A stretch of 64,000 nt of DNA from Selaginella moellendorffii. Its lineage: Eukaryota; Plantae; Lycopodiophyta. How positions within the stretch are numbered: the first letter of the stretch is position 1; every line of letters starts with the position of its first letter. The notes below the pieces were generated by a model. That model was not told the DNA's origin. It saw only the letters and a program-made list of their open reading frames with translations, and made no database searches. Position numbers and translations under genes: made by a program. Where the stretch lies: the NCBI RefSeq assembly GCF_000143415.4, contig NW_003314336.1:844853-908852 (forward strand), written 5' to 3'. Shown here one piece after another: positions 15,154 to 60,953 of the stretch.

Positions 15154-16890
15154 ATGGGAGGAGGTGTGGCCATGGCCGCCGTCTTCAATGTGGTCCAGGT
15201 GGAGCGAGTGCCCGGCCCCTGGGACGTCTCCTCCTCTTCCTCCTCCTCCTCAGGCTCCTCCTCGCGCACGACTGTGCGCTTGGGACTCCCCAGCAAGGGA
15301 CGAATGGCCGAAGGGACCCTCAATCTCCTCAAAGTCTCTCAAGTTTTCTTCTAAGTTTCTTGGCTCTAATGTGGCTTGTGTTCTTCCGTGTGTCTAGGAA
15401 TGCCACCTCTCCGTGTGTAAGCCCAATCCTCGCCAGTACGTGGCCGACATCACCGAGGTATGTACGATCCTGTGATTTTGCAAATCTCACTCGTGCGTGC
15501 GGTCGTTCGTGATCCAGCTCCAAAATCTGGAAGTGTGGTTCCAGAGGGAATCGGATGTGGTGAGGAAGATGCTGGCCGGCGACATTGATCTGGGAATCGT
15601 GGGCTACGACGTGGTTGCGGAGCACGGCCAGGTGAGTGTCGCTCGCTCGTTCGCTCGCTCGCAAGTCTTTAGCGCCTTTCTCTTTCTCTGGCCAGGACAA
15701 CGAGGACTTGGTTGTCGTCCACGACCAGCTTGGGTTCGGCGAGTGCCATCTCGGCCTCGGCGTAAGTTCCTGGTTGTTTTTTCCATCCATCAAGTGGCTG
15801 ATTATCTTGCTGTGCTGTGTAGATTCCCAAGTATGGCATCTTTGAGAACGTTTCCTCCGTCTCAGACTTGGCTGCCATGCCGCAGTGGACGTCAAGCCGT
15901 CCGTTGCGAATAGTGACTGGCTTCACTTACGTAAGACGATGAGTTTCTCGCTGAATAGCAAAGAAGAAATTCCCTTTTTGCAGCTCGCTAGTCGCTTATT
16001 GAAAGCCAAGGGACTGGAGCACATCCAGCTCTCCACTGCGGATGGCGCATTAGAAGCGGCACCGGCTGTAAGAAGATTTCGGAGCACGTCCACCAGTTGA
16101 AGCTTTGCGCGCTTCCTTCTAACACAAAAACCGTCGTTTGTCTCGTCAGATGGGAACGGCTGATGCGATCCTGGACCTTGTCAGCAGCGGGACGACGCTG
16201 CGAGAGAACAACCTCAAGGAAATCGAGGGTGGAACGCTCATCAAAAGCCAGGTTCCATGTTTGCTTTCAAACCAGTCTCGTCTCCACGCTCGAGTTTTGT
16301 CCAGGGCGTGCTGGTTGCGAGCAAGCGAGCGTTGCTCAAGCGCAAGGGTGCCCTGGACGTGACGCGGGAGATGCTGGAGCGCTTGGAAGCTCACCTGCGA
16401 GCCAAGAGTCAGTTCCTGGTAACTCTTTCGCTTTGAATCGCATTTCATGTCTTGGGTTTCCTTATGACGAACGACGTAGCTGACTGGAAACATGCGTGGG
16501 GAGTCGCAAGAGCATGTTGCCGAGCTTGTCCTTCGGCACACACGCCTCTCGGGCCTCCAGGTAAAAGAGTAAAAACACTTTTTTTCGCATGATTTCCTTT
16601 CACTTTTCTTTCAGGGGCCTACGATCAGTCCGGTGTATAGCCTTCCAGATGCTGGTGATGGTGTCAAGGTGCAGTACTACGCGGTGGCAATCTGTGTGCA
16701 CAAGAGGCAACTCTACGATGCGGTGAACGAGCTGAGAAAGGTAAAAGCTCAAAGCATACAGAACCAGTGTCTCTGAGCTTTCTTGGTGTTGCAGATCTGC
16801 GGCAGCGGCGTCCTTGTTTCGCCCCTCACGTACATCTTCGACGAGGAGCCTCCCAGATGGCGGCAGCTGCTCGCCACCCTGCAAGAGTGA
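15154..16890 (+). CDS. HISN1: ATP phosphoribosyltransferase (histidine biosynthesis); multi-exon
   Basis: [83 protein letters not shown]; stop at 16888-16890. The start is 15154 or 15172. Confidence 0.93.
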
Positions 16891-17027
16891 CTCGAGAACA
16901 AGACATTATTTGTGCGCAATAAACGGTTGCGGGAAATAGATCCAAGGAATATGCGGCGCGGCCTTGTCATGGCATATTCCGTGTTCTTGTACGCTGGGAT
17001 TCGCAGGGACAGGCGTGCGTGGCTGCC

Positions 17028-18845
17028 ATGGACGACCGAGACGAGGAGCGAGGCATCACTTACGACGGGGACGAGTTCTTTGATCTGGACGGCTCCGGCA
17101 GCGATGACGACGGGCGAATTGTGATGCCCACAAGCGGGCAGGCCACCTTGACGCTGGGACGCGACAGGGTGCTGCACATATCCATCCCCAGGAAGCGGAG
17201 GCGGCCGCTGGAGATTGTCTTGGAAAGAGGATCGGGGTCACGCGATCAAACAATACCCGCGGCTGCGGAGATTGGTGTGGATCGACGAGATCACACGGTA
17301 CCCGAGCCTGAGGAGATTTGGGTGGATCAACAGGAGCACGAGTCTTCTTCTGATTCTTCCGACAGTGACCCGCGCGGAGTTGACGATGACAAGGTCTGGA
17401 GTTTGCTTCCGCGGCCAGCACCCGCTATACGTTCGGAAGCAAAGATCGATCTTGCGCAGCAGTCCAAAGTCCGCCCCGTGGAGAATGCCGAAGGAGAAGA
17501 AGAGGAGGTTTATGATGCTTTGGAAGCGGAGGAGGTGGCGGCCGAGCCGAGCTCAAAGGTGGTGGGCTTTGCAGCACAAAGCGAGGACGATGACGAAAAC
17601 GTTCAGGAGGTGGCGACTTCTCCAGCAGCAGCCGATGGTGATACTGTAAAGAACGAAAGTTCAAAGCTGGTGAGGTTTGTAGCAGCAGCAACTGAAACAC
17701 TTGTATCGGATGATGATGGGGACGAGGACGAGTTTCAAGAGGCGAGCACAAGAACCTTGAGGTTTGCAGCGATAGAGAAACCCCTTGCAACATCGGCCAA
17801 GAGGGCAGTGAGATTCCACGCACCCGAATTCGACGAATCAGAAGAAGAAGAAGACGAAGAGAAAGAACAAGTGAAGCTGGTGAGGTTCGCCGACGCCGCA
17901 GCCACACCCAAGAAGAAGAAGTCGGTCCGTTTCGCCCGCGGCACCAGTGGCGGCAGCAGTCCCAGCAAGGCCAAGGTCCGGTTCGACGACGACGATGGCC
18001 CCGGCGAGAAGAAGAAGGCGTCGCTCGAGTCGCCAAAGGTGGTGAGGTTCCTGCTGCCCACAATCGACGCGGTGTCCGGCAAGCCGCGCATGCGCATCTT
18101 CCTGCCCGGCGTCCAGCGGGTGCGGCGCAACACCATCAAGCACAGCACCGTCCGAGTGTACCCAGACCCGCCACTGTGGCTGGTGCTCCGGCTCATGGAA
18201 ACGGAGCGCTTCCGCCACTTCTCGGGCCGCGGCCGCGGAAAGGCGTGCCACATTCTGGGCGTTGCCGGGACCATTGTCTCCGCGCTGGCGCTGCTCGTCT
18301 GCATGGTGCTGCTGGCGCTCTACTTTCACCTCCGCCCGCGCATCCCCCACCTCCGCATCGACGACTTCGACGTGTCCGTCATGTACGAGCTGCTGGACGA
18401 GGACACGCTGTTGATGCAGCAGGTGGAGGACCGCGGGAACTACTACTTCTACAAGGGCATCGTCTACGGCATGTTCATGGTGAGCTACCGCAACCTCAAC
18501 AGCGCCGTCGACTTCTACAACTATTACGTGGAGAGCTCCGTCTTCTACCAGGGCCATTTCATGGGCAAGTCGCTCGTCCACAACTTCATGGTGCCGCGCA
18601 AGTCGACCATGCCGCTCCAGTTTGTGATCTACAACGAGCTGCTGGTGCCGCTGCAGGTGGGCTACACCATGCTCAAGCAGATTGCGACGCTGCGGGTGGA
18701 CTACGTGTGCGAGTTTATCATCAAGGCGCGGATGTCGACGCTAGGCAGCATCATCACGTCGCGCTTCTTCTGGCACCGGGTCCGCTGCTCCATCGAGATG
18801 ACCGACGAGAAGATCGACCGGCTGTGCAGGGACTACAACTACTGA
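17028..18845 (+). CDS. Intronless LEA_2/NHL-like single-pass membrane protein with a long acidic disordered N-terminus
   Basis: TM helix (ILGVAGTIVSALALLVCMVLLALYF), then LRPRIPHLRI, YRNLNSAVDFY, VFYQG...G...F, and a terminal VRC: the LEA_2/NDR1-HIN1 pattern. First ATG at 17028. Confidence 0.75.
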   Translation: MDDRDEERGITYDGDEFFDLDGSGSDDDGRIVMPTSGQATLTLGRDRVLHISIPRKRRRPLEIVLERGSGSRDQTIPAAAEIGVDRRDHTVPEPEEIWVDQQEHESSSDSSDSDPRGVDDDKVWSLLPRPAPAIRSEAKIDLAQQSKVRPVENAEGEEEEVYDALEAEEVAAEPSSKVVGFAAQSEDDDENVQEVATSPAAADGDTVKNESSKLVRFVAAATETLVSDDDGDEDEFQEASTRTLRFAAIEKPLATSAKRAVRFHAPEFDESEEEEDEEKEQVKLVRFADAAATPKKKKSVRFARGTSGGSSPSKAKVRFDDDDGPGEKKKASLESPKVVRFLLPTIDAVSGKPRMRIFLPGVQRVRRNTIKHSTVRVYPDPPLWLVLRLMETERFRHFSGRGRGKACHILGVAGTIVSALALLVCMVLLALYFHLRPRIPHLRIDDFDVSVMYELLDEDTLLMQQVEDRGNYYFYKGIVYGMFMVSYRNLNSAVDFYNYYVESSVFYQGHFMGKSLVHNFMVPRKSTMPLQFVIYNELLVPLQVGYTMLKQIATLRVDYVCEFIIKARMSTLGSIITSRFFWHRVRCSIEMTDEKIDRLCRDYNY

Positions 18846-18940
18846 TGATGGAACCCGGTTGCGCTGGCGGTTGAACTTGTAGCTAGCCTACGTGGCATTT
18901 CCCATTCTTATAACCCGAGCTTCAGCTTCTCCGAAAACGT

Positions 18941-19897
18941 ATGGAGAAGACCACCACCACTCGGAGTGCCGCCGTCCTCATTGTCGATGGCCAGGACGAG
19001 AAAGCGGACAGCGCCTCCAAACTGGAGGAGCGTCGCGGTGCCATCAAAACAACAGCACCCCCGCCTCCAGCCCTGAAGAAGAAAGCAGCCTCGAGCTCGA
19101 AAGCGGTGGCAGTCCCCGCCACCCCTGCTAGTACTACCGGAGACAAGTCGGTAAGATTCGTTCTCACCGGCAAGGACGGCTCCACTCGAGTGATCCGGTT
19201 CCCGGGGGGCGTCCTCCGCAGCGTCAAGATCGGCAAGATCCCCGTGTATCCGCTGCCGGTGGTCCTGGGCCTCATGGAAACGCAGCGCTTCGCACACCTG
19301 ACCAGCGCCACCCGCCGCCGCGCCTGGAGCGCGCTCTCCTCGGCCCTTCTCGCCGTCTCGGCCCTGCTGCTCGCTGTCGCGCTCGCCATGCTGCTCGTCT
19401 ACCTCCACCTCCGCCCCCGGATCCCCCACCTCATGATCAAGGACTACAACATGGGCCTGGACGTGATCGCCATTGACTTGCATCGCAGCGGCCTCTACTT
19501 CTCGTACGAGCTTGACTTTGATGCCGAGTTCTTCATTGACTACCACAACGTCAACGCCCGCGTGGACATCCACAACGAGTACGTGGAGTCGACCGTCTTC
19601 TACCGCGGCACCCCCGTCGGCAAGGCGATCGTGCGCCAGTTTGTGGTGCCCCGGGCCACCCGGCTGGACATCCTGGTCCACGTGGAGCTCACCACCACGC
19701 CCCTGGAGCTCAACGTCGGCTACACGCTCATCCGGGACATCGAGAACTTTGAGATGGTCTGCGAGCTCGTTGTCAAGGCCAGGATGACAACCGTCGGGAG
19801 GCTCAAGTCACCTCTCGTCTGGCTCCGTGTTCGCTGCTTCATCCTACTGCTCCACTATCAAATTATGAGCCAAAACTGCCGAAACTTCAACTTCTGA
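18941..19897 (+). CDS. Tandem paralog: intronless LEA_2/NHL-like membrane protein
   Basis: Shares VRF..FPGG, VYP..V.LMET.RF.H, the TM helix, HLRPRIPHL, YVES.VFY.G, VGYT and KARM.T.G with the upstream gene; starts 95 bp after its stop. Confidence 0.78.
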   Translation: MEKTTTTRSAAVLIVDGQDEKADSASKLEERRGAIKTTAPPPPALKKKAASSSKAVAVPATPASTTGDKSVRFVLTGKDGSTRVIRFPGGVLRSVKIGKIPVYPLPVVLGLMETQRFAHLTSATRRRAWSALSSALLAVSALLLAVALAMLLVYLHLRPRIPHLMIKDYNMGLDVIAIDLHRSGLYFSYELDFDAEFFIDYHNVNARVDIHNEYVESTVFYRGTPVGKAIVRQFVVPRATRLDILVHVELTTTPLELNVGYTLIRDIENFEMVCELVVKARMTTVGRLKSPLVWLRVRCFILLLHYQIMSQNCRNFNF

Positions 19898-19954
19898 GAC
19901 CGAATGCTACGCGTACTTACCGTGGATAGACAGAGAAAAAAATGTACCAGAGGC

Positions 19955-22900
19955 TCAGAAAATGTCGTCCCACTTTGTGTTCGAAGGGTCCACCGGCAAG
20001 TCGTCCATGGGATCGCTTGGTTCGTCGGGTATGCACAGGCTGGTGTAATTATCTAGTTTTGCTGGAATCATCTGCAGAAGGGAAATGTAGAGTGAGTTGC
20101 ATGAGTTCAGTAAACCTTACAGGAGGCTCTTCTTTTTGCCGGAGCAGCAGCTGAAAATTAACTGACTTGGCGAAGAAGGGGTGCTCCTTGATGTCGGCAG
20201 CTCCTCGCTTTCGACAGCCGAGCCGCGTCTCAGGATTCGGGTCCAGCAGTTTCCGTACAATATCAGCAGCATCTGAGCTAACATAGGGTGGAAACTTGAC
20301 ACGTCCGTCTATGATCCTTTGAAACACTAACTGGACGAAACACCGTGCAAAGTCAGGACGTAAACCAGAAAATACTTGATTACCTGCGGAGGATCTTCCC
20401 CGCGATTAAAAGCGCTTGTATTCGTTATCAACTCAAAGATGAGGCAGCCTAGAGCCCAATAATCGACAGCCTTTCCATGTCCCTGTCTTCGAATTATCTC
20501 CGGTGCCATATAATCTGGAGTCCCACACATGGAGTAGGTTCGTCGATTGTAGATACGCTTGGCAAAACCCATGTCAATAAGCTTTGGATAGCCGTTGTCT
20601 CCTATCAGAGTGTTTTCGGGCTTCAAATCACGGTAAACAATTCCTTTTCCGTGCATGTATTCCAGCCTGTGCTTGACAAGTCAACACGATTGTAAACAAA
20701 GACATACTCTACTTACGCCAAAAGAACAGCACCGGCATAAAATGATGCCTCAGCCTCCCTCAAAGGCCCAACTTTCTCCATATGAAAGAATAACTCGCCT
20801 CCCGTGGTCAGCTCTTGAAGCAAGTAAATCTGCATGATACTCAGAAATTTCAGCTCCAAGAAATAAGTTCAACTGTGACTTACATTCTTGTCATCCTTGT
20901 AGGTTCGAATAAGCTTGGTGATAAACGGATGGTCCATTTCAGTCATAAATAGTTTCTCATTTCTGAGATGTTCTTCCTCCTGGAGTCTTATGACCTGGAT
21001 CCAAACATGCTTGAATGATAAAATATCGAACTGGCTAACAGCACGTAAAAGGGCTCAGATATTGACGTATTAGAACCTTTGCCTTGCTGACACACTTCAA
21101 AGCATAATACTCGCGTGTCCGTCGGCAAAACACCAGCTTCACTTTGCCGAAGAGCCCTGCATACACACAACGAGCTTGCGTCAGGAGATAATAAAGCTCA
21201 ATTACAAGCTGTGACCTGTTCCGATAATTCCAAGTTCTTCCAAATCCTCATATCCAATTGTTTTAACAATCCCCTTTAATTCATTTTCCTTTTTACGATT
21301 TTCAATGAGCTCCCGGAGCGGTCCAAAGTTTGCCTCCAGCACTCCCTTGTCCAGGTAGAAAAGCTCTGCTCCTCCTGTAGATATCGTGCCTTTTAAGAAA
21401 ATGCCCGCTACGGACACAAGGATAGCAAACCTGGTCTGTTGGCATCCATTGTTCCCGCAACCATGGTGGAAGGCCTTGGCTCGTCATCCAAAAGAGCATT
21501 CTCTCCAAAATATGATCCCTTAGATAGAAGAATCTGGTCCCCCTTCTGTTTGCTCCCATCGGGTGTGGGAGTATGTACTGTTTCGATCACTGTTCCCTTG
21601 CTCACGATGTATAAACGATCACCGGGGTCTCCAGCTCGATACAACATTTCACCAGAATGTAGCTTTCTCACGCCCATGGAATGAGATAATAAGTCTATTT
21701 CTGAGCCAAAAAGGTAGTCTAAGCAATGTATTTTCCTGTGACAAAGCACTCGTGTAAGATAGAGTAAATAAAAGCAAGAAAGACTTGGCATTACCCGAGT
21801 ACTTTGGTATTTGTCAACCGGGTGAGTAACTCTTGAATAGGGCCAAGAATTGAAGTCAGCTTCGCAATAGTCACGGATAAACATATTGCCCTGGAAGATT
21901 CCACCACAGATGTTGTTTTGCAAGGTGGCCAGTAGCTTTCATCTTTTGCGCTTGCACGAGTTAAAAGGCATTCATCTCCAAAAACACCATAGGTCGTGAG
22001 AGTCCAAGGAGAGCTACAACTGCACAATCAAAGTAACGAGTTAAAATGAAAAACTGGAACAGCCAACCCACCCAATACTCTGACGAGGACTTCCACCTTT
22101 TCTAACTTTAGTCGATCCACCAAGGCCCTGTGAAAGACTGAGCAAGTCCTGGGTAGTCAGTGCACCCGCGACAACGTTGCTATTTCGTGGAGATTGAGGT
22201 GTACTGCCGGACTTAAGTAGTGAACCAAGCCTGCTACCCCAAAAGCCAATACCAGAGTCCCTTGGTTCCCTCACGTTTTGTCTAGAGGTGTAGGAAATAT
22301 GGCTGCCACGCGGTGTCATCACCATTTCGTCGTCAGCAGACTTGGAAAGACATATAGTCCCGTTCTGAACCACGTAAATTCTAGCTTCAGGCCCCAAAAC
22401 GTCACCACATTTTGTAATCTCTTCGCCTTAAGAAAGCAAAACGTATCAATAAGTGAGCTTTCAGTAGAATTAAAATAGCCTTTCAGTACCTGCGACGTGA
22501 GCGGTATCGTCAAAGTGACGGGCTAGACTGTAAAGTTGTTCAGAACTTAGCTCCAGAAATGAAGGCAATCTCTGTAAACCAAGCGCAACAAGCTGCACTT
22601 GGAGGTCCTTCCTAATATCATTAAGAAGTGCCTCAGTGAATAAACTCCGTTCAATAACAATGACAGATGTCTGGAAATCGAACACGCTTATGTTAGTCGG
22701 TATCCCATATGAGAATGTCGGACAGCTTACATGGTCAGAGGAAGCAATGAAATTCCACGAGATGACCGTCTCGTCGTTGAGAATAAGTGCCTCACCAAGT
22801 ATTTCCAACCGCTTCATAACAGCAACAGTTTCACCACGAGAATTACGAGATGAACCTCCAGCTGCACCCCAACTTATTCTAACCTGTCCTTCCTGGATAA

Positions 22901-57296: not shown

Positions 57297-59342
57297 ATGG
57301 GCGCCGGTCGCCACACTCAGACGGTCCTCGTCGATTCGACATGGAATGGCGCAGCATTCCATTACCGCGGCCTCCATCCTCGTGATCTTGGCGCGGTGAT
57401 CTTCGTTTGCAACGGCGAGACGATGGAGGAGTGCCTGAGGAAGAATCTTTTCGGACTGCCGCGGCCACACATCGCCTACGTCCAGCACATCGACGCAGGG
57501 ATGCCCCTCTTCTTGTTCAACTACGACGATCGATCGCTCCACGGCGTCTTCGCGGCCACTGGCAGGGGCGCCCTCTCGATCGATCCTCACGCCTGGAGCC
57601 CCAACGGTAGCGCGCCGACGAAGTACCCCTGCCAGGTTCGTGTCCGGCTGGAAATCCAGTGCGCTCCACTGCCGGAGAAGGTTTTCTCGAGAGTGATCAA
57701 GGAGAACTACGTCTCCGCGGGGCGATTCATGTTCGAGCTTACCAGGAAGCAAATGCACGAGCTTGTGGGACTCTTCACCAAGGGAAAGGTAGCATCTTCT
57801 TCGAAGAGCCCTGTGGTGGCTCCTCCTCCTCTTCCTCCGCCACCAAGCAACAGAGCTCCCACGGCGTGGAAGCAAGTGGTAGCAGCTCCTCCTCCGGCTG
57901 TTCTTCCTCAAGCGGCGCCGCCACCACCACCACCGCCAGCAGCTGTGAAGTCCGAGAATTTGCCACCTCCGAGTCCGAGTCCTCGAGCGCCGCCACCACC
58001 TTCCAGTGATGCAGATCAAGAGTACATTGTTCCGGCAGTTCCTACAGCACAACTCGTGGTCCAGGAGGCTCTCCACTCCGAGGACAATTCTACAGTGCTG
58101 GATCGTATCCTCGAGAAGCTCAAGGTTGTCGATCCTCCCGAGGAGAAGAATGTCTCGGCTTCCTCGTCGTCTCAAGAGATCATCTTTGGCGCCGCGATTC
58201 CTACCGACATGGGGAGCTTGATGCTAGCTTCCGGAGGGCAGTTTGATCCTTCCGTCGCGAAAGCGGTGGATAAAAGCTTGCGGCTGTGCTCCGACGCTGT
58301 GGCGGAGATGCGTGAGACCGAGATCCGGCTGGGCAAGACGATGGAGGAGCTGAGAGTGAAAGGGGAGTGTCTCAAGGAGCTGGATGCTGTCCGAGCCAAG
58401 AACTTGGAGCTTGCCAACGTGAGCATCAGCTTGTCGGGGCAACTCCAAGAGCTCAAGGCGGAGGTGGCGGCGGTGAAGCGCTTGGCCACGTTTCAGGCGT
58501 TGTATCTCATCGGTGGCTCCAGTGGCGAAGGGAAAGATCGCTCTGTGGACAAGTTCGTGCTGCGTACCGGCGAGCTTTGGCAGGCGGCGCCTCTGCTAGC
58601 ACCACGATCGTGTTCCGCGGCCGGAGTTTTGAGTGGGAAGATCTACGTGTTTGGAGGCACCATTGGAGAGACCAACGTGACCTCGACCGAGCAGTATGAT
58701 CCGGAAGAAAACGTCTGGAGTGTGGTGAGCAAGCCGATGGTCAAAGCTCGCGCATACCACGGAGGAGCCGTGGTTGGAAGCAGGATCTTTGCTCTCGGTG
58801 GTAGAAACGACACTGCCTTCCTCTCGGAGACGGAGTCATTCGATCAGGAGGTGGGATGGATGGCTTCGGTCCCAATGATGGAGAGACGAGGCGCATTCTC
58901 TCCGGTGGTGGTGGAGGGATCGATCTACGCTTTCGGTGGAACAGACGGGAACCTCTACCTCGACTCGGCCGAGCGGTTTGATCCACGCGAGGGCATCTGG
59001 AGGAGCCTTCCGCCGATGAGCTCCAAGCGGCTGTGGTTCCAGTCGGCTGCCTGGAACAACAAAGTCTACGTGCTCGGGGGCCACGATGGTTGCGACTACT
59101 TGGCGAATGTGGAGCGCTTTGATCCTCGCGCTGGGAAGTGGGAGACGATCAAGCCACTGGCTGGGTCGAGAGCTCACGGTGCTGCGGCGGTGGTGGACGG
59201 ATCCATTTGCGTGGTGGCGGGGCTGGACAAGAAGCATCACTTCGTCAACACCATCGAGTGCTACGGTGAATCGTCGAGCTCGCGAGTGATCGAAGTTTGT
59301 GATCTCCACCAGCGCAGCTTGTTCTCCCTTGGAGTGATCTGA
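57297..59342 (+). CDS. DCD (development and cell death) domain + Pro-rich linker + coiled coil + Kelch-repeat protein, intronless
   Basis: GAVIFVCNGETMEECL..NLFGLP...GMPLFLFNY...LHGVF (DCD); repeated IYVFGG/IFALGG...ERFDPR..W Kelch blades. Confidence 0.9.
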   Translation: MGAGRHTQTVLVDSTWNGAAFHYRGLHPRDLGAVIFVCNGETMEECLRKNLFGLPRPHIAYVQHIDAGMPLFLFNYDDRSLHGVFAATGRGALSIDPHAWSPNGSAPTKYPCQVRVRLEIQCAPLPEKVFSRVIKENYVSAGRFMFELTRKQMHELVGLFTKGKVASSSKSPVVAPPPLPPPPSNRAPTAWKQVVAAPPPAVLPQAAPPPPPPPAAVKSENLPPPSPSPRAPPPPSSDADQEYIVPAVPTAQLVVQEALHSEDNSTVLDRILEKLKVVDPPEEKNVSASSSSQEIIFGAAIPTDMGSLMLASGGQFDPSVAKAVDKSLRLCSDAVAEMRETEIRLGKTMEELRVKGECLKELDAVRAKNLELANVSISLSGQLQELKAEVAAVKRLATFQALYLIGGSSGEGKDRSVDKFVLRTGELWQAAPLLAPRSCSAAGVLSGKIYVFGGTIGETNVTSTEQYDPEENVWSVVSKPMVKARAYHGGAVVGSRIFALGGRNDTAFLSETESFDQEVGWMASVPMMERRGAFSPVVVEGSIYAFGGTDGNLYLDSAERFDPREGIWRSLPPMSSKRLWFQSAAWNNKVYVLGGHDGCDYLANVERFDPRAGKWETIKPLAGSRAHGAAAVVDGSICVVAGLDKKHHFVNTIECYGESSSSRVIEVCDLHQRSLFSLGVI

Positions 59343-59486
59343 TCGCCGGTATGGTTTTTCTTCGCTATCTCTCTCACACTCTTTCTTCTTTGTTTGACAA
59401 GCTTAATAAGTTTCGTTTTGCGATAGATAGATTTCATTTCCTTGTAGAAAACCTTTTAGAGAAACATTTTAGGGCTGGAGGGAGTG

Positions 59487-60953
59487 ATGGCCGGCGATGG
59501 CGCTGGCGATGGCTCTGGCGGTGCCCCGCGACGGCTCAAGGGCAAGCTCTGCCGCGAAGAGGTAGCAGTAGTGCTAGCGGCAGTGGCAACGGCAGTGGTT
59601 CTTGTCCAGCGATTCGTGGATGAGCACAGCTTGCTTGTGCTTCTCCCCGGCAATGCTGCGGCCGCCCTGGAGTCGTCAATGCAGGCTACCAGCAGCGCGC
59701 TCGCGAAGCTCCAGACTATGTTCTCGCTCACGGCGGCGAGCGATGCCGCGGCCGCCGCTGCTGATCCGGCCATCGCCAGCGACGATGATCGCCAGCTCCA
59801 TTCTTCCTCGTCGAGCCTGAGAAAGGCCGTCCATGCGATGGGGGATACGATCGCTCCTCCTCGGTTTCACGATGTTTTCCAAAGCGGTGACGATGTCCAC
59901 TGGAAGGCGAGCTTCCGGATGTCTCGGGCCAGTTTCGCGAGGCTGCTGGAGATTTTAGGCCCGGTTCTCGAGAGACAAGAGCCCGCTGACATCCCCGCCG
60001 ATCGAAAGCTGGCCGCGACGCTCTACCGCTTGGCTCACGGCGCGACCATCAAAGTCGTAGCTCGCAAGTTTGGAATCAGCACTGGCAGCTGCTCCAAGGC
60101 CTTCTACGACGTTTGCAAGGGATTGGAGGAGAAGCTGGGCCACCTGTTCGATTTCCCGACGTCGAGCGAGAGATTGACGAGCATCTCCGGCGAGTTCGCC
60201 GCTGTAGGATTGCCACACTGCTGTGGAGCTCTTGGCTGCACCAACTTTGCCGTGGAGAGGCCGCCGGGAGAAATGGGGATCGACTACTTCGATCACACCA
60301 GGAACTACAGCGTCGTGATGCAAGGGGTGGTGGACTCTCGCTCGCGGTTTCTCGACATCTCGGTGGGCTGGCCGGGATGCATCCCTCCCGCCGCCATCCT
60401 TCTCAAGACGAGGTTCTACTCGCGAGTTCGAGAGAGCCATGAACTTCTCCAAGGACCTCCGCTGGACCTCGGTGGTGGCATTTTCATTCCTCGCTACGTT
60501 CTCGGAGACCGCTCCTACAACTTGCAGCCGTGGCTCATCACTCCATACTCCCAGCCCGAGGATTCGAGCTTCGATCTGACTGCTCTCTTCAACAAGGCAC
60601 ACAGGCATGCAATGCGGCCGCTGCGTCGAGCTTTCGGGATGCTCAAGGAGCAGTGGCAGCTGCTCAAGACGACGCAGCGGGTGGACAGCATCGAGCTGCT
60701 GCCGTTCATCGTGGCGGCGTCGTGCGTGCTCCAGAACTTCCTCATCGACAACGGGGAGGCGATGCCCGAGGTGGAGGAGGAGCTGGAGCAGCGGGAGCCG
60801 GCGGTGGTGGACGGGGATCCAGACGTTTACGGGGAGAGCGTGCGAAGCGCTTTGGCAGGCTTTGTCGGGCAGTATCAAACAGCAATGGGATTTGGAGGAG
60901 GTCCAGTGCGATCCGTGGGTCAGATGGTGGTAGATGGAACGAGGAACGGCTAG
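59487..60953 (+). CDS. Domesticated PIF/Harbinger transposase-derived nuclease-like protein (HDP1/ALP1/HARBI1 group; most like HDP1)
   Basis: W...FRMSR..F, LAATLYRLAHG (HTH), CCGALG, SVVMQGVVDSRSRFLDISVGWPG, YVLGD..Y..PWLITPY, AFGMLK..W, ELLPFIV...CVLQNFL. No TIRs seen; flanked by normal genes. Confidence 0.85.
   Translation: MAGDGAGDGSGGAPRRLKGKLCREEVAVVLAAVATAVVLVQRFVDEHSLLVLLPGNAAAALESSMQATSSALAKLQTMFSLTAASDAAAAAADPAIASDDDRQLHSSSSSLRKAVHAMGDTIAPPRFHDVFQSGDDVHWKASFRMSRASFARLLEILGPVLERQEPADIPADRKLAATLYRLAHGATIKVVARKFGISTGSCSKAFYDVCKGLEEKLGHLFDFPTSSERLTSISGEFAAVGLPHCCGALGCTNFAVERPPGEMGIDYFDHTRNYSVVMQGVVDSRSRFLDISVGWPGCIPPAAILLKTRFYSRVRESHELLQGPPLDLGGGIFIPRYVLGDRSYNLQPWLITPYSQPEDSSFDLTALFNKAHRHAMRPLRRAFGMLKEQWQLLKTTQRVDSIELLPFIVAASCVLQNFLIDNGEAMPEVEEELEQREPAVVDGDPDVYGESVRSALAGFVGQYQTAMGFGGGPVRSVGQMVVDGTRNG

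Follow-up and report, generated by a model that had tools for sequence, protein, structure and literature searches.

Eight RVxF-type motifs in the disordered tail of an NHL-type LEA_2 membrane protein of Selaginella moellendorffii, a candidate recruiter of protein phosphatase 1

We analyzed a 64,000-nucleotide stretch of the lycophyte Selaginella moellendorffii (contig NW_003314336.1; hereafter the window, to whose first letter all positions refer). It contains an open reading frame (ORF) for a protein, termed P1, which carries eight short RVxF-type motifs in a long N-terminal tail. P1 is a real, transcribed membrane protein of S. moellendorffii, probably of type II, and the array is a short linear motif under selection in drifting surroundings, not a recent tandem duplication. 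Judged from its sequence, P1 is a candidate membrane-anchored, multivalent recruiter or sink of the catalytic subunits of protein phosphatase 1 (PP1; TOPP in plants), a reading to which we assign a probability of roughly 40%. New here is an NHL-type (NDR1/HIN1-like) LEA_2 protein with an unusual tail, which may be a PP1 interactor of unusual valency.

The motif array in the P1 tail

The tail was scanned with a pattern of the ELM type, [KR]-x(0,1)-[VIL]-x-F. Motif 1 reads KVVGF (17556–17570), motif 2 KLVRF (17664–17678), and motif 3, a variant with Leu, RTLRF (17751–17765). They are followed by KRAVRF (motif 4, 17799–17816, core RAVRF from 17802), a second KLVRF (motif 5, 17874–17888), KKKKSVRF (motif 6, 17910–17933, core KSVRF from 17919), and KAKVRF (motif 7, 17967–17984, core KVRF from 17973). 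Motif 8, KVVRF (18036–18050), is the juxtamembrane copy and aligns with KSVRF of the tandem paralog P2. All are on the plus strand and together occupy 165 residues (aa 177–341). An earlier note on this DNA had listed seven motifs and the RTLRF variant within about 165 aa of acidic, disordered sequence. All eight were found at these positions in the frame of the ORF 17028–18845 (+), and the setting agrees with that description: the tail is acidic (12% E and 12% D; 24% D+E), and AlphaFold2 models aa 1–377 without secondary structure and with a predicted local distance difference test score (pLDDT) below 50 throughout. A number of copies are preceded by basic residues and followed by acidic runs. 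Of the 12 Phe residues in the tail, eight are inside the motifs and four are in acidic EF(F) contexts.

The ELM-type pattern matches eight times in the 408-aa N-terminal part, compared with a mean of 0.88 after shuffling, and none of the 20,000 shuffles reached eight. The shuffling check proposed in the earlier note thus places the array far beyond chance. The exact tripeptide VRF was observed six times (shuffle mean 0.11, maximum 4). Other ORFs, both in the window and in paralog loci of about 44 kb, reach four matches at most. When stricter published definitions of RVxF are applied, seven (Wakula), four (Hendrickx), and three (Meiselbach) of the eight copies comply.

For the comparison of the copies, the eight motifs were aligned on Phe (position 0), and the pairwise identity was determined per position. 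It is 1.0 for F(0), 0.75 for both R(−1) and V(−2), 0.39 for K/R(−4), and 0.36 for S(−6), with Ser present at −6 in five of the eight copies. The other flanking positions are varied (identity ≤ 0.25). Third codon positions within the motif have diverged (identity 0.36–0.57), and Arg is encoded by AGG, AGA, CGT, and CGG across the copies. The distances between successive copies are irregular (36, 29, 17, 24, 15, 17, and 22 residues). At the DNA level, identity is 63–78% over 27 nt and limited to the motif, which rules out a recent tandem duplication. The spacers cannot be aligned, and some copies are connected by weak DNA repeat families. Because the core has been kept while flanks, spacing, and wobble positions diverged, we consider the array a selected short linear motif.

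The P1 gene, its product, and its relatives

P1 (605 aa) is encoded by a single ORF without introns from the first ATG at 17028 to 18845 (+), stop codon included. Within the tail, this frame contains no stop, compared with 11 and 13 in the remaining two forward frames, and at least 345 open codons are confined to it. The G+C content at third codon positions (GC3) changes in steps along the ORF: it is 0.70–0.78 for aa 1–80 (0.78 in the first 40 codons), 0.40–0.57 for aa 81–280, and 0.85–1.0 for aa 281–605. Motifs 1–4 are in the low-GC3 middle of the tail (17268–17867, aa 81–280), and motifs 5–8 share the high-GC3 part with the LEA_2 domain. This step suggests that the middle part of the tail is younger or under different constraint. 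Two antisense ORFs, 17425–18063 and 17838–18581 (both −), were rejected as by-products of composition bias, as homologs and the GC3 signal are found in the plus frame only. An exact look-up of P1 and P2 in protein collections gave no record, and word-index protein searches with P1 330–605, P1 165–400, and P2 gave no matches. Since neither was found in the collections searched, both appear to be unannotated and absent from them.

Transcription was assessed with contigs from four public runs, which we judged to be RNA-derived because the introns of both neighboring genes are skipped. Together, the contigs cover P1 and P2 completely and without joints, and the P1 ORF is contiguous in all four runs. 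Record 12 of run X7 spans 16872–20095, and record 8 of run X4 spans 17278–18856, linking the tail from aa 84 through the stop codon. As RNA-derived contigs connect the tail with the LEA_2 domain, a fusion or mis-assembly artifact is ruled out. The tail has length alleles, which are in frame: run X7 has a 3-nt deletion at 17200, and run X4 is a net 21 nt shorter at 17308–17342, with several substitutions as well, within a Ser/Asp-rich stretch. These are consistent with the two haplotypes of the S. moellendorffii assembly. None of the seven substitutions seen in the four runs falls in a motif, and between-run differences in the tail comprise three non-synonymous and two synonymous changes.

The start codon at 17028 is supported because the first ~20 residues of P1 (MDD...RGITYDGDEFFD) resemble the N-termini of Selaginella paralogs. 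RGITY (aa 8–12, 17049–17063, +) may be a degenerate N-terminal copy of the motif; it matches MPRGVRFGGD of SELMODRAFT_407653 by eye, with an offset of one residue in a 13-sequence alignment. An upstream ORF of 57 codons (16951–17124) in a different frame overlaps the P1 start codon, and its TGA overlaps the next in-frame ATG of P1 at 17124 (tgATG), which is still 5′ of all eight motifs. Provided that the 5′ UTR extends so far, this ORF may act as a translational control.

The AlphaFold2 model of P1 was built on the 13-sequence alignment. Behind the disordered tail (aa 1–377, 17028–18158), it shows a short helix, LWLVLRLM (aa 383–390), which directly follows TVRVYPDPP (aa 374–382; together 18147–18197). 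A transmembrane (TM) helix comprises aa 401–434 (18228–18329) with pLDDT 84–94, and a LEA_2-type beta-sandwich of pLDDT ~90, presumably extracytosolic, comprises aa 441–603 (18348–18836; all +). The sandwich matches the luminal LEA-2 domain of TMEM106B (8b7d; VIA-align Z 11.9, Foldseek E 3.4e-7), Arabidopsis LEA14 At1g01470 (1xo8; VIA-align Z 9.2), Af_0446 (3but; VIA-align Z 7.6, Foldseek E 1.5e-5), and At2g46140 (1yyc; Foldseek E 1.1e-3). Directly after the TM helix follows HLRPRIPH, in which P437 and P440 are invariant in the alignment (NHL-type LRPxxP). N489 and N491 are invariant too; between them, P1 has Leu (NLN) and P2 has Val (NVN). The corresponding NHL feature is NPN early in the domain. 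The net charge is +3 on the side before the TM helix and 0 on the side after it. By the positive-inside rule and the family topology, the tail is probably cytosolic. Hence, P1 is, as modeled, a type-II, single-pass membrane protein of NHL/TMEM106B architecture with tail, TM helix, and LEA-2 domain.

The assignment to LEA_2/NHL membrane proteins, which the earlier note had made, is borne out by the fold and by remote homology, though it stays below the Pfam threshold for LEA_2. A Pfam search with P1 gave no significant match, LEA_2 (PF03168) included. P2 reached 18.1 bits (E 0.0038) against LEA_2, for which the gathering cut-off is 25.4 bits. A PDB sequence search with a profile of P1 and P2 returned noise only. 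By Atlas features, the entries nearest to P2 are LEA_2 clusters of Streptophyta (score 0.91); the same kind of search with aa 160–360 of the P1 tail gave no usable match.

The tail also contains an acidic tract with an EFFD core, DGDEFFDLDGSGSDDD, at aa 13–28 (17064–17111), which is FFAT-like (FFAT, two phenylalanines in an acidic tract, binds VAP proteins of the endoplasmic reticulum (ER)). EFQEAST (aa 235) and EFDESEE (aa 267) are weaker acidic EF sites. Should the FFAT-like site be real, the tip of the tail could serve as an ER tether at a membrane contact site.

An exhaustive search of 1.84 billion representatives with the P1+P2 profile matched seven proteins. The four best are from S. moellendorffii itself, namely SELMODRAFT_407653, 402719/408156, 418107, and 418106. 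The others are proteins of Adiantum (E 6e-5) and Sphagnum (E 7e-4), both named “LEA-2 subgroup domain-containing” in UniRef, and one sequence of a Logan assembly. Selaginella paralogs bear this UniRef name as well. Since the four closest relatives are paralogs of the same species, sequence similarity places P1 among NHL-like LEA_2 proteins, in a clade that is small, divergent, and specific to Selaginella. Inspected by eye, the proteins of fern, moss, and Logan start with M..[KR][VI]YP, and VYP of P1 resembles this extreme N-terminal [KR][VI]YP; in the 13-sequence alignment, the columns differ. On this by-eye reading, everything upstream of aa 374 in P1 would be a lineage-specific extension.

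The tandem paralog P2 (318 aa, 18941–19897, +) matches P1 with 38% identity across the last 275 aa, and its tail contains KSVRF (19145–19159) and RVIRF (19187–19201). An extra A after 19508 in its coding region in one RNA-derived contig of run X7 reflects a frameshifted allele or else an assembly error. The matches in the tails of the Selaginella paralogs are RGVRF, RAVVF (paralog P0002, without Arg), KSVRF plus RVIRF, and RVRW. In 407653, the match MPRGVRFGGDAEGDEE is at the extreme N-terminus; 402719 has TRRAVVFDIEQQ, and in 418107, RVRW adjoins the TM helix. An RVxF-type match thus occurs at least once in the tail of each of the five members of the Selaginella clade (P1 and four paralogs), and none was found in the four outgroup sequences (fern, moss, Logan). 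The earlier note had named conservation in orthologs as a check. Within this one species, the check holds insofar as each of the four paralogs has at least one match; it is weakened by modest probabilities and differing positions, which are taken up below.

A second tandem cluster of the NHL-like clade was observed at L001:4324–7386 and in L002 (S. moellendorffii GL377572.1 / GL377601.1), with a 418107-like copy, a fragment, and a 407653-like copy. The public gene models of 407653 and 418106 include upstream pieces of a neighboring partial copy and look wrong; the simple ORF L001:6574–7383 begins with MPRGVRF.

Candidate readers of the motif

By inspection, PP1-docking RVxF is the only known motif class that fits all eight copies. 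Its variant KVRF, the core of motif 7, is the docking sequence of GADD34. The following classes were rejected. The D-site of mitogen-activated protein kinases (MAPK) requires a defined distance between two basic residues, and KKKKSVRF alone fits. Cyclin RxL is matched by RTLRF alone, B56 LxxIxE by no copy, and the Atg8/LC3-interacting motif (AIM/LIR, [WFY]xx[LIV]) by FAAI alone. For a type-II dibasic ER-export signal, the spacing is wrong, and eight copies are not needed. According to one source (PMC12109034), 90% of PP1 interactors are disordered and 70% employ RVxF, and the PP1-binding region of rice RSS1 combines two RVxF motifs with an Asp/Glu-rich stretch.

Relative to the fern and moss relatives that start at [KR][VI]YP, the Selaginella clade has gained an N-terminal extension with [KR]-x-V-x-F and acidic residues behind it. 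In P1, this extension has grown to ~375 disordered residues and the motif has multiplied to eight, with the copies kept by selection as the intervening sequence drifted. If PP1 is the reader, each copy would dock, on the cytosolic side, to a PP1 (TOPP) catalytic subunit, with its Val and Phe in the RVxF groove. PP1 would thereby be concentrated on the membrane in which P1 resides, either as several subunits at once or as one held with high avidity through rebinding, and P1 would work as a membrane recruiter or a phosphatase sink. The spacing of 15–36 residues should allow several sites, perhaps not all, to be occupied together. In its fullest form, the proposal is that P1 acts as a lineage-specific membrane “PP1 sponge” that clusters or sequesters several TOPP subunits, with valency setting the local dosage without a dedicated regulatory domain, and with the EFFD site maybe tying it to ER VAP at a contact site. 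We hold this form to be rather doubtful. As the earlier note had supposed, there is no description of such a role for NHL proteins in the literature searched, which yielded no paper connecting NHL/LEA_2 proteins with TOPP or RVxF.

Several points weigh against PP1 docking. A PP1 interactor typically has one RVxF motif or two, and we know of no precedent for eight copies. The RVxF pattern is degenerate, and only three to four copies pass the Meiselbach and Hendrickx definitions; the failing copies do so through a Leu at −3 or −2, a Gly at x, or the lack of a basic residue at −4. Seven of the eight copies have Arg at the free “x” position, and Ser is recurrent at −6; the RVxF definition demands neither. 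The PP1 motifs SILK ([GS]IL[KR]) and MyPhoNE (RxxQ[VIL][KR]x[YW]) are absent from the whole of P1. Such secondary motifs are found in a minority of RVxF-class interactors. In the paralogs, the motifs stand at different positions, and their individual chance probabilities of 0.04–0.4 are weakly beyond chance. The orientation of the tail is deduced from charge and family, the contigs carry no information on RNA strand, 5′ end, or expression level, and the upstream ORF overlapping the start codon could reduce the translation of P1. In rice, RVxF mutants of OsINH2 and OsINH3 still bound TOPPs (PMC9521630), so the motif is not always decisive.

Because Arg is kept at the free position and SILK and MyPhoNE are lacking, the possibility of another reader has to be taken seriously. 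The selected motif would then be recognized by another cytosolic partner of S-x-K-x-V-R-F, such as a Selaginella-specific adaptor, a kinase docking groove, or a trafficking factor, and the RVxF fit would be coincidental. It fits this alternative that Arg(−1) is as conserved as Val(−2), that Ser(−6) recurs, that the strict definitions accept so few copies, and that the loose RVxF pattern gives ~0.9 chance matches per shuffled tail. A basic residue at x is, however, common in strong PP1 binders (KVRF, KVKF, RVKF, KVHF), paralog P0002 has RAVVF without Arg, and the remaining known classes (MAPK D-site, cyclin RxL, B56 LxxIxE, AIM/LIR) fit at most one or two copies. We regard another reader as possible and somewhat unlikely.

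The array could also be functionless, i.e., a decaying remnant of repeated internal duplications of an ancestral juxtamembrane K-x-VRF segment in a tail of low constraint. The tail is indeed lineage-specific and variable, with in-frame indel alleles and the non-synonymous changes mentioned above; the low GC3 of aa 81–280 suggests a young or weakly constrained segment, and weak DNA repeat families link some copies. Neutral decay would, however, erode the motif like its flanks, yet identity is 0.75–1.0 for three adjacent residues and ≤ 0.25 for most flanking positions. In addition, the wobble positions inside the motif have diverged, and no polymorphism of the four runs is in a motif. Hence, a functionless array is improbable.

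Still less probable is that K-x-V-R-F forms short beta-strand elements for self-association of the tail, by zippering or in condensates with the acidic spacers, or for binding to the membrane surface. Basic-hydrophobic pentapeptides in acidic spacers do form a blocky charge pattern, and all 12 tail Phe are in motifs or acidic EF(F) sites. The AlphaFold2 model has no strands or contacts in the tail, however; the one or two copies in the paralogs are too few for zippering, and the strict retention of Phe and Arg suggests a specific pocket.

That the long tail is not made, with a downstream start or a block of 17028 by the upstream ORF leaving an ordinary short NHL-type protein, is very improbable: the overlap of 16951–17124 with the ATG, the missing entries in protein collections, and contigs without strand or 5′ end would allow it, but the open codons lie in one frame only, the indel alleles are in frame, the first 20 residues are like paralog N-termini, GC3 is high in the first 40 codons of P1, and the ATG at 17124 also precedes all eight motifs.

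Neighboring genes and known systems

The neighboring genes have GT..AG introns of ~53 nt. Downstream, a convergent gene at 19955–20800 (−) has introns of ~50 nt, which appear as CT..AC as read (minus strand). In run X2, one RNA contig contains its 3′ end together with P1 and P2. Because they are co-assembled in one contig, the P1/P2 and convergent transcripts overlap or abut. Farther away, 57297–59342 and 59484–60953 comprise a plant-specific gene with a DCD (development and cell death) domain and Kelch repeats and an adjoining ORF with a DDE_Tnp_4 (PIF/Harbinger-type) transposase domain. The short introns and the DCD-Kelch gene are in line with S. moellendorffii as the source, to which the closest relatives of P1 independently point. 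Rfam gave no match in the window.

In its layout, P1 matches the NHL LEA_2 proteins of land plants and animal TMEM106B: an N-terminal tail, probably cytosolic in P1, is followed by a single TM helix and an LEA-2 beta-sandwich that would be extracytosolic. The luminal domain of TMEM106B was assigned to the LEA-2 superfamily by Levine (bioRxiv 10.1101/2021.03.12.435176). With the LEA-2 proteins of fern and moss, P1 has in common LRPxxP after the TM helix, the N-x-N motif, and two C-terminal Cys. It differs from NHL proteins by a very divergent sequence and by NLN (NVN in P2) instead of NPN, and its 375-aa acidic tail with the array is without counterpart in the fern, moss, and Logan relatives.

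PP1 obtains its specificity from hundreds of interactors, each normally with one RVxF motif and secondary contacts. GADD34 (PPP1R15A) is like P1 in its KVRF core, its largely disordered and membrane-associated nature, and its acidic repeat stretches. Unlike P1, it has a single RVxF and a region that recruits eIF2alpha, and it lacks such a TM anchor, an LEA_2 domain, and sequence homology. Rif1, from yeast to mammals, has several PP1-docking motifs (RVxF, SILK) in diverging disordered regions, with phosphorylation sites flanking them (PMC3937515). It resembles P1 in holding several docking motifs within otherwise diverging disordered sequence, but these are two to four motifs of two kinds instead of eight of one, and Rif1 is a nuclear HEAT-repeat protein that is not membrane-anchored. 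Among plant proteins, RSS1/TdRL1, Inhibitor-2, and SBG1 are disordered like the P1 tail and bind TOPP/PP1; SBG1 binds via SILK and RVxF and inhibits TOPPs (PMC13652734). In contrast to P1, they are small and soluble, have one or two motifs, often with SILK or other secondary motifs, are not membrane proteins, and lack an LEA_2 domain.

P1 is restricted to one lycophyte lineage, which limits its reach. There, it illustrates that a short linear motif can multiply within an extension that is young and evolves fast. If PP1 docking is true, eight copies fixed to a membrane within 165 disordered residues would be a natural test of motif valency in PP1 recruitment, i.e., of avidity, clustering, and sequestration. 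In that case, the poorly understood cytosolic tails of NHL/LEA_2 proteins would also be connected with phosphatase signaling for the first time.

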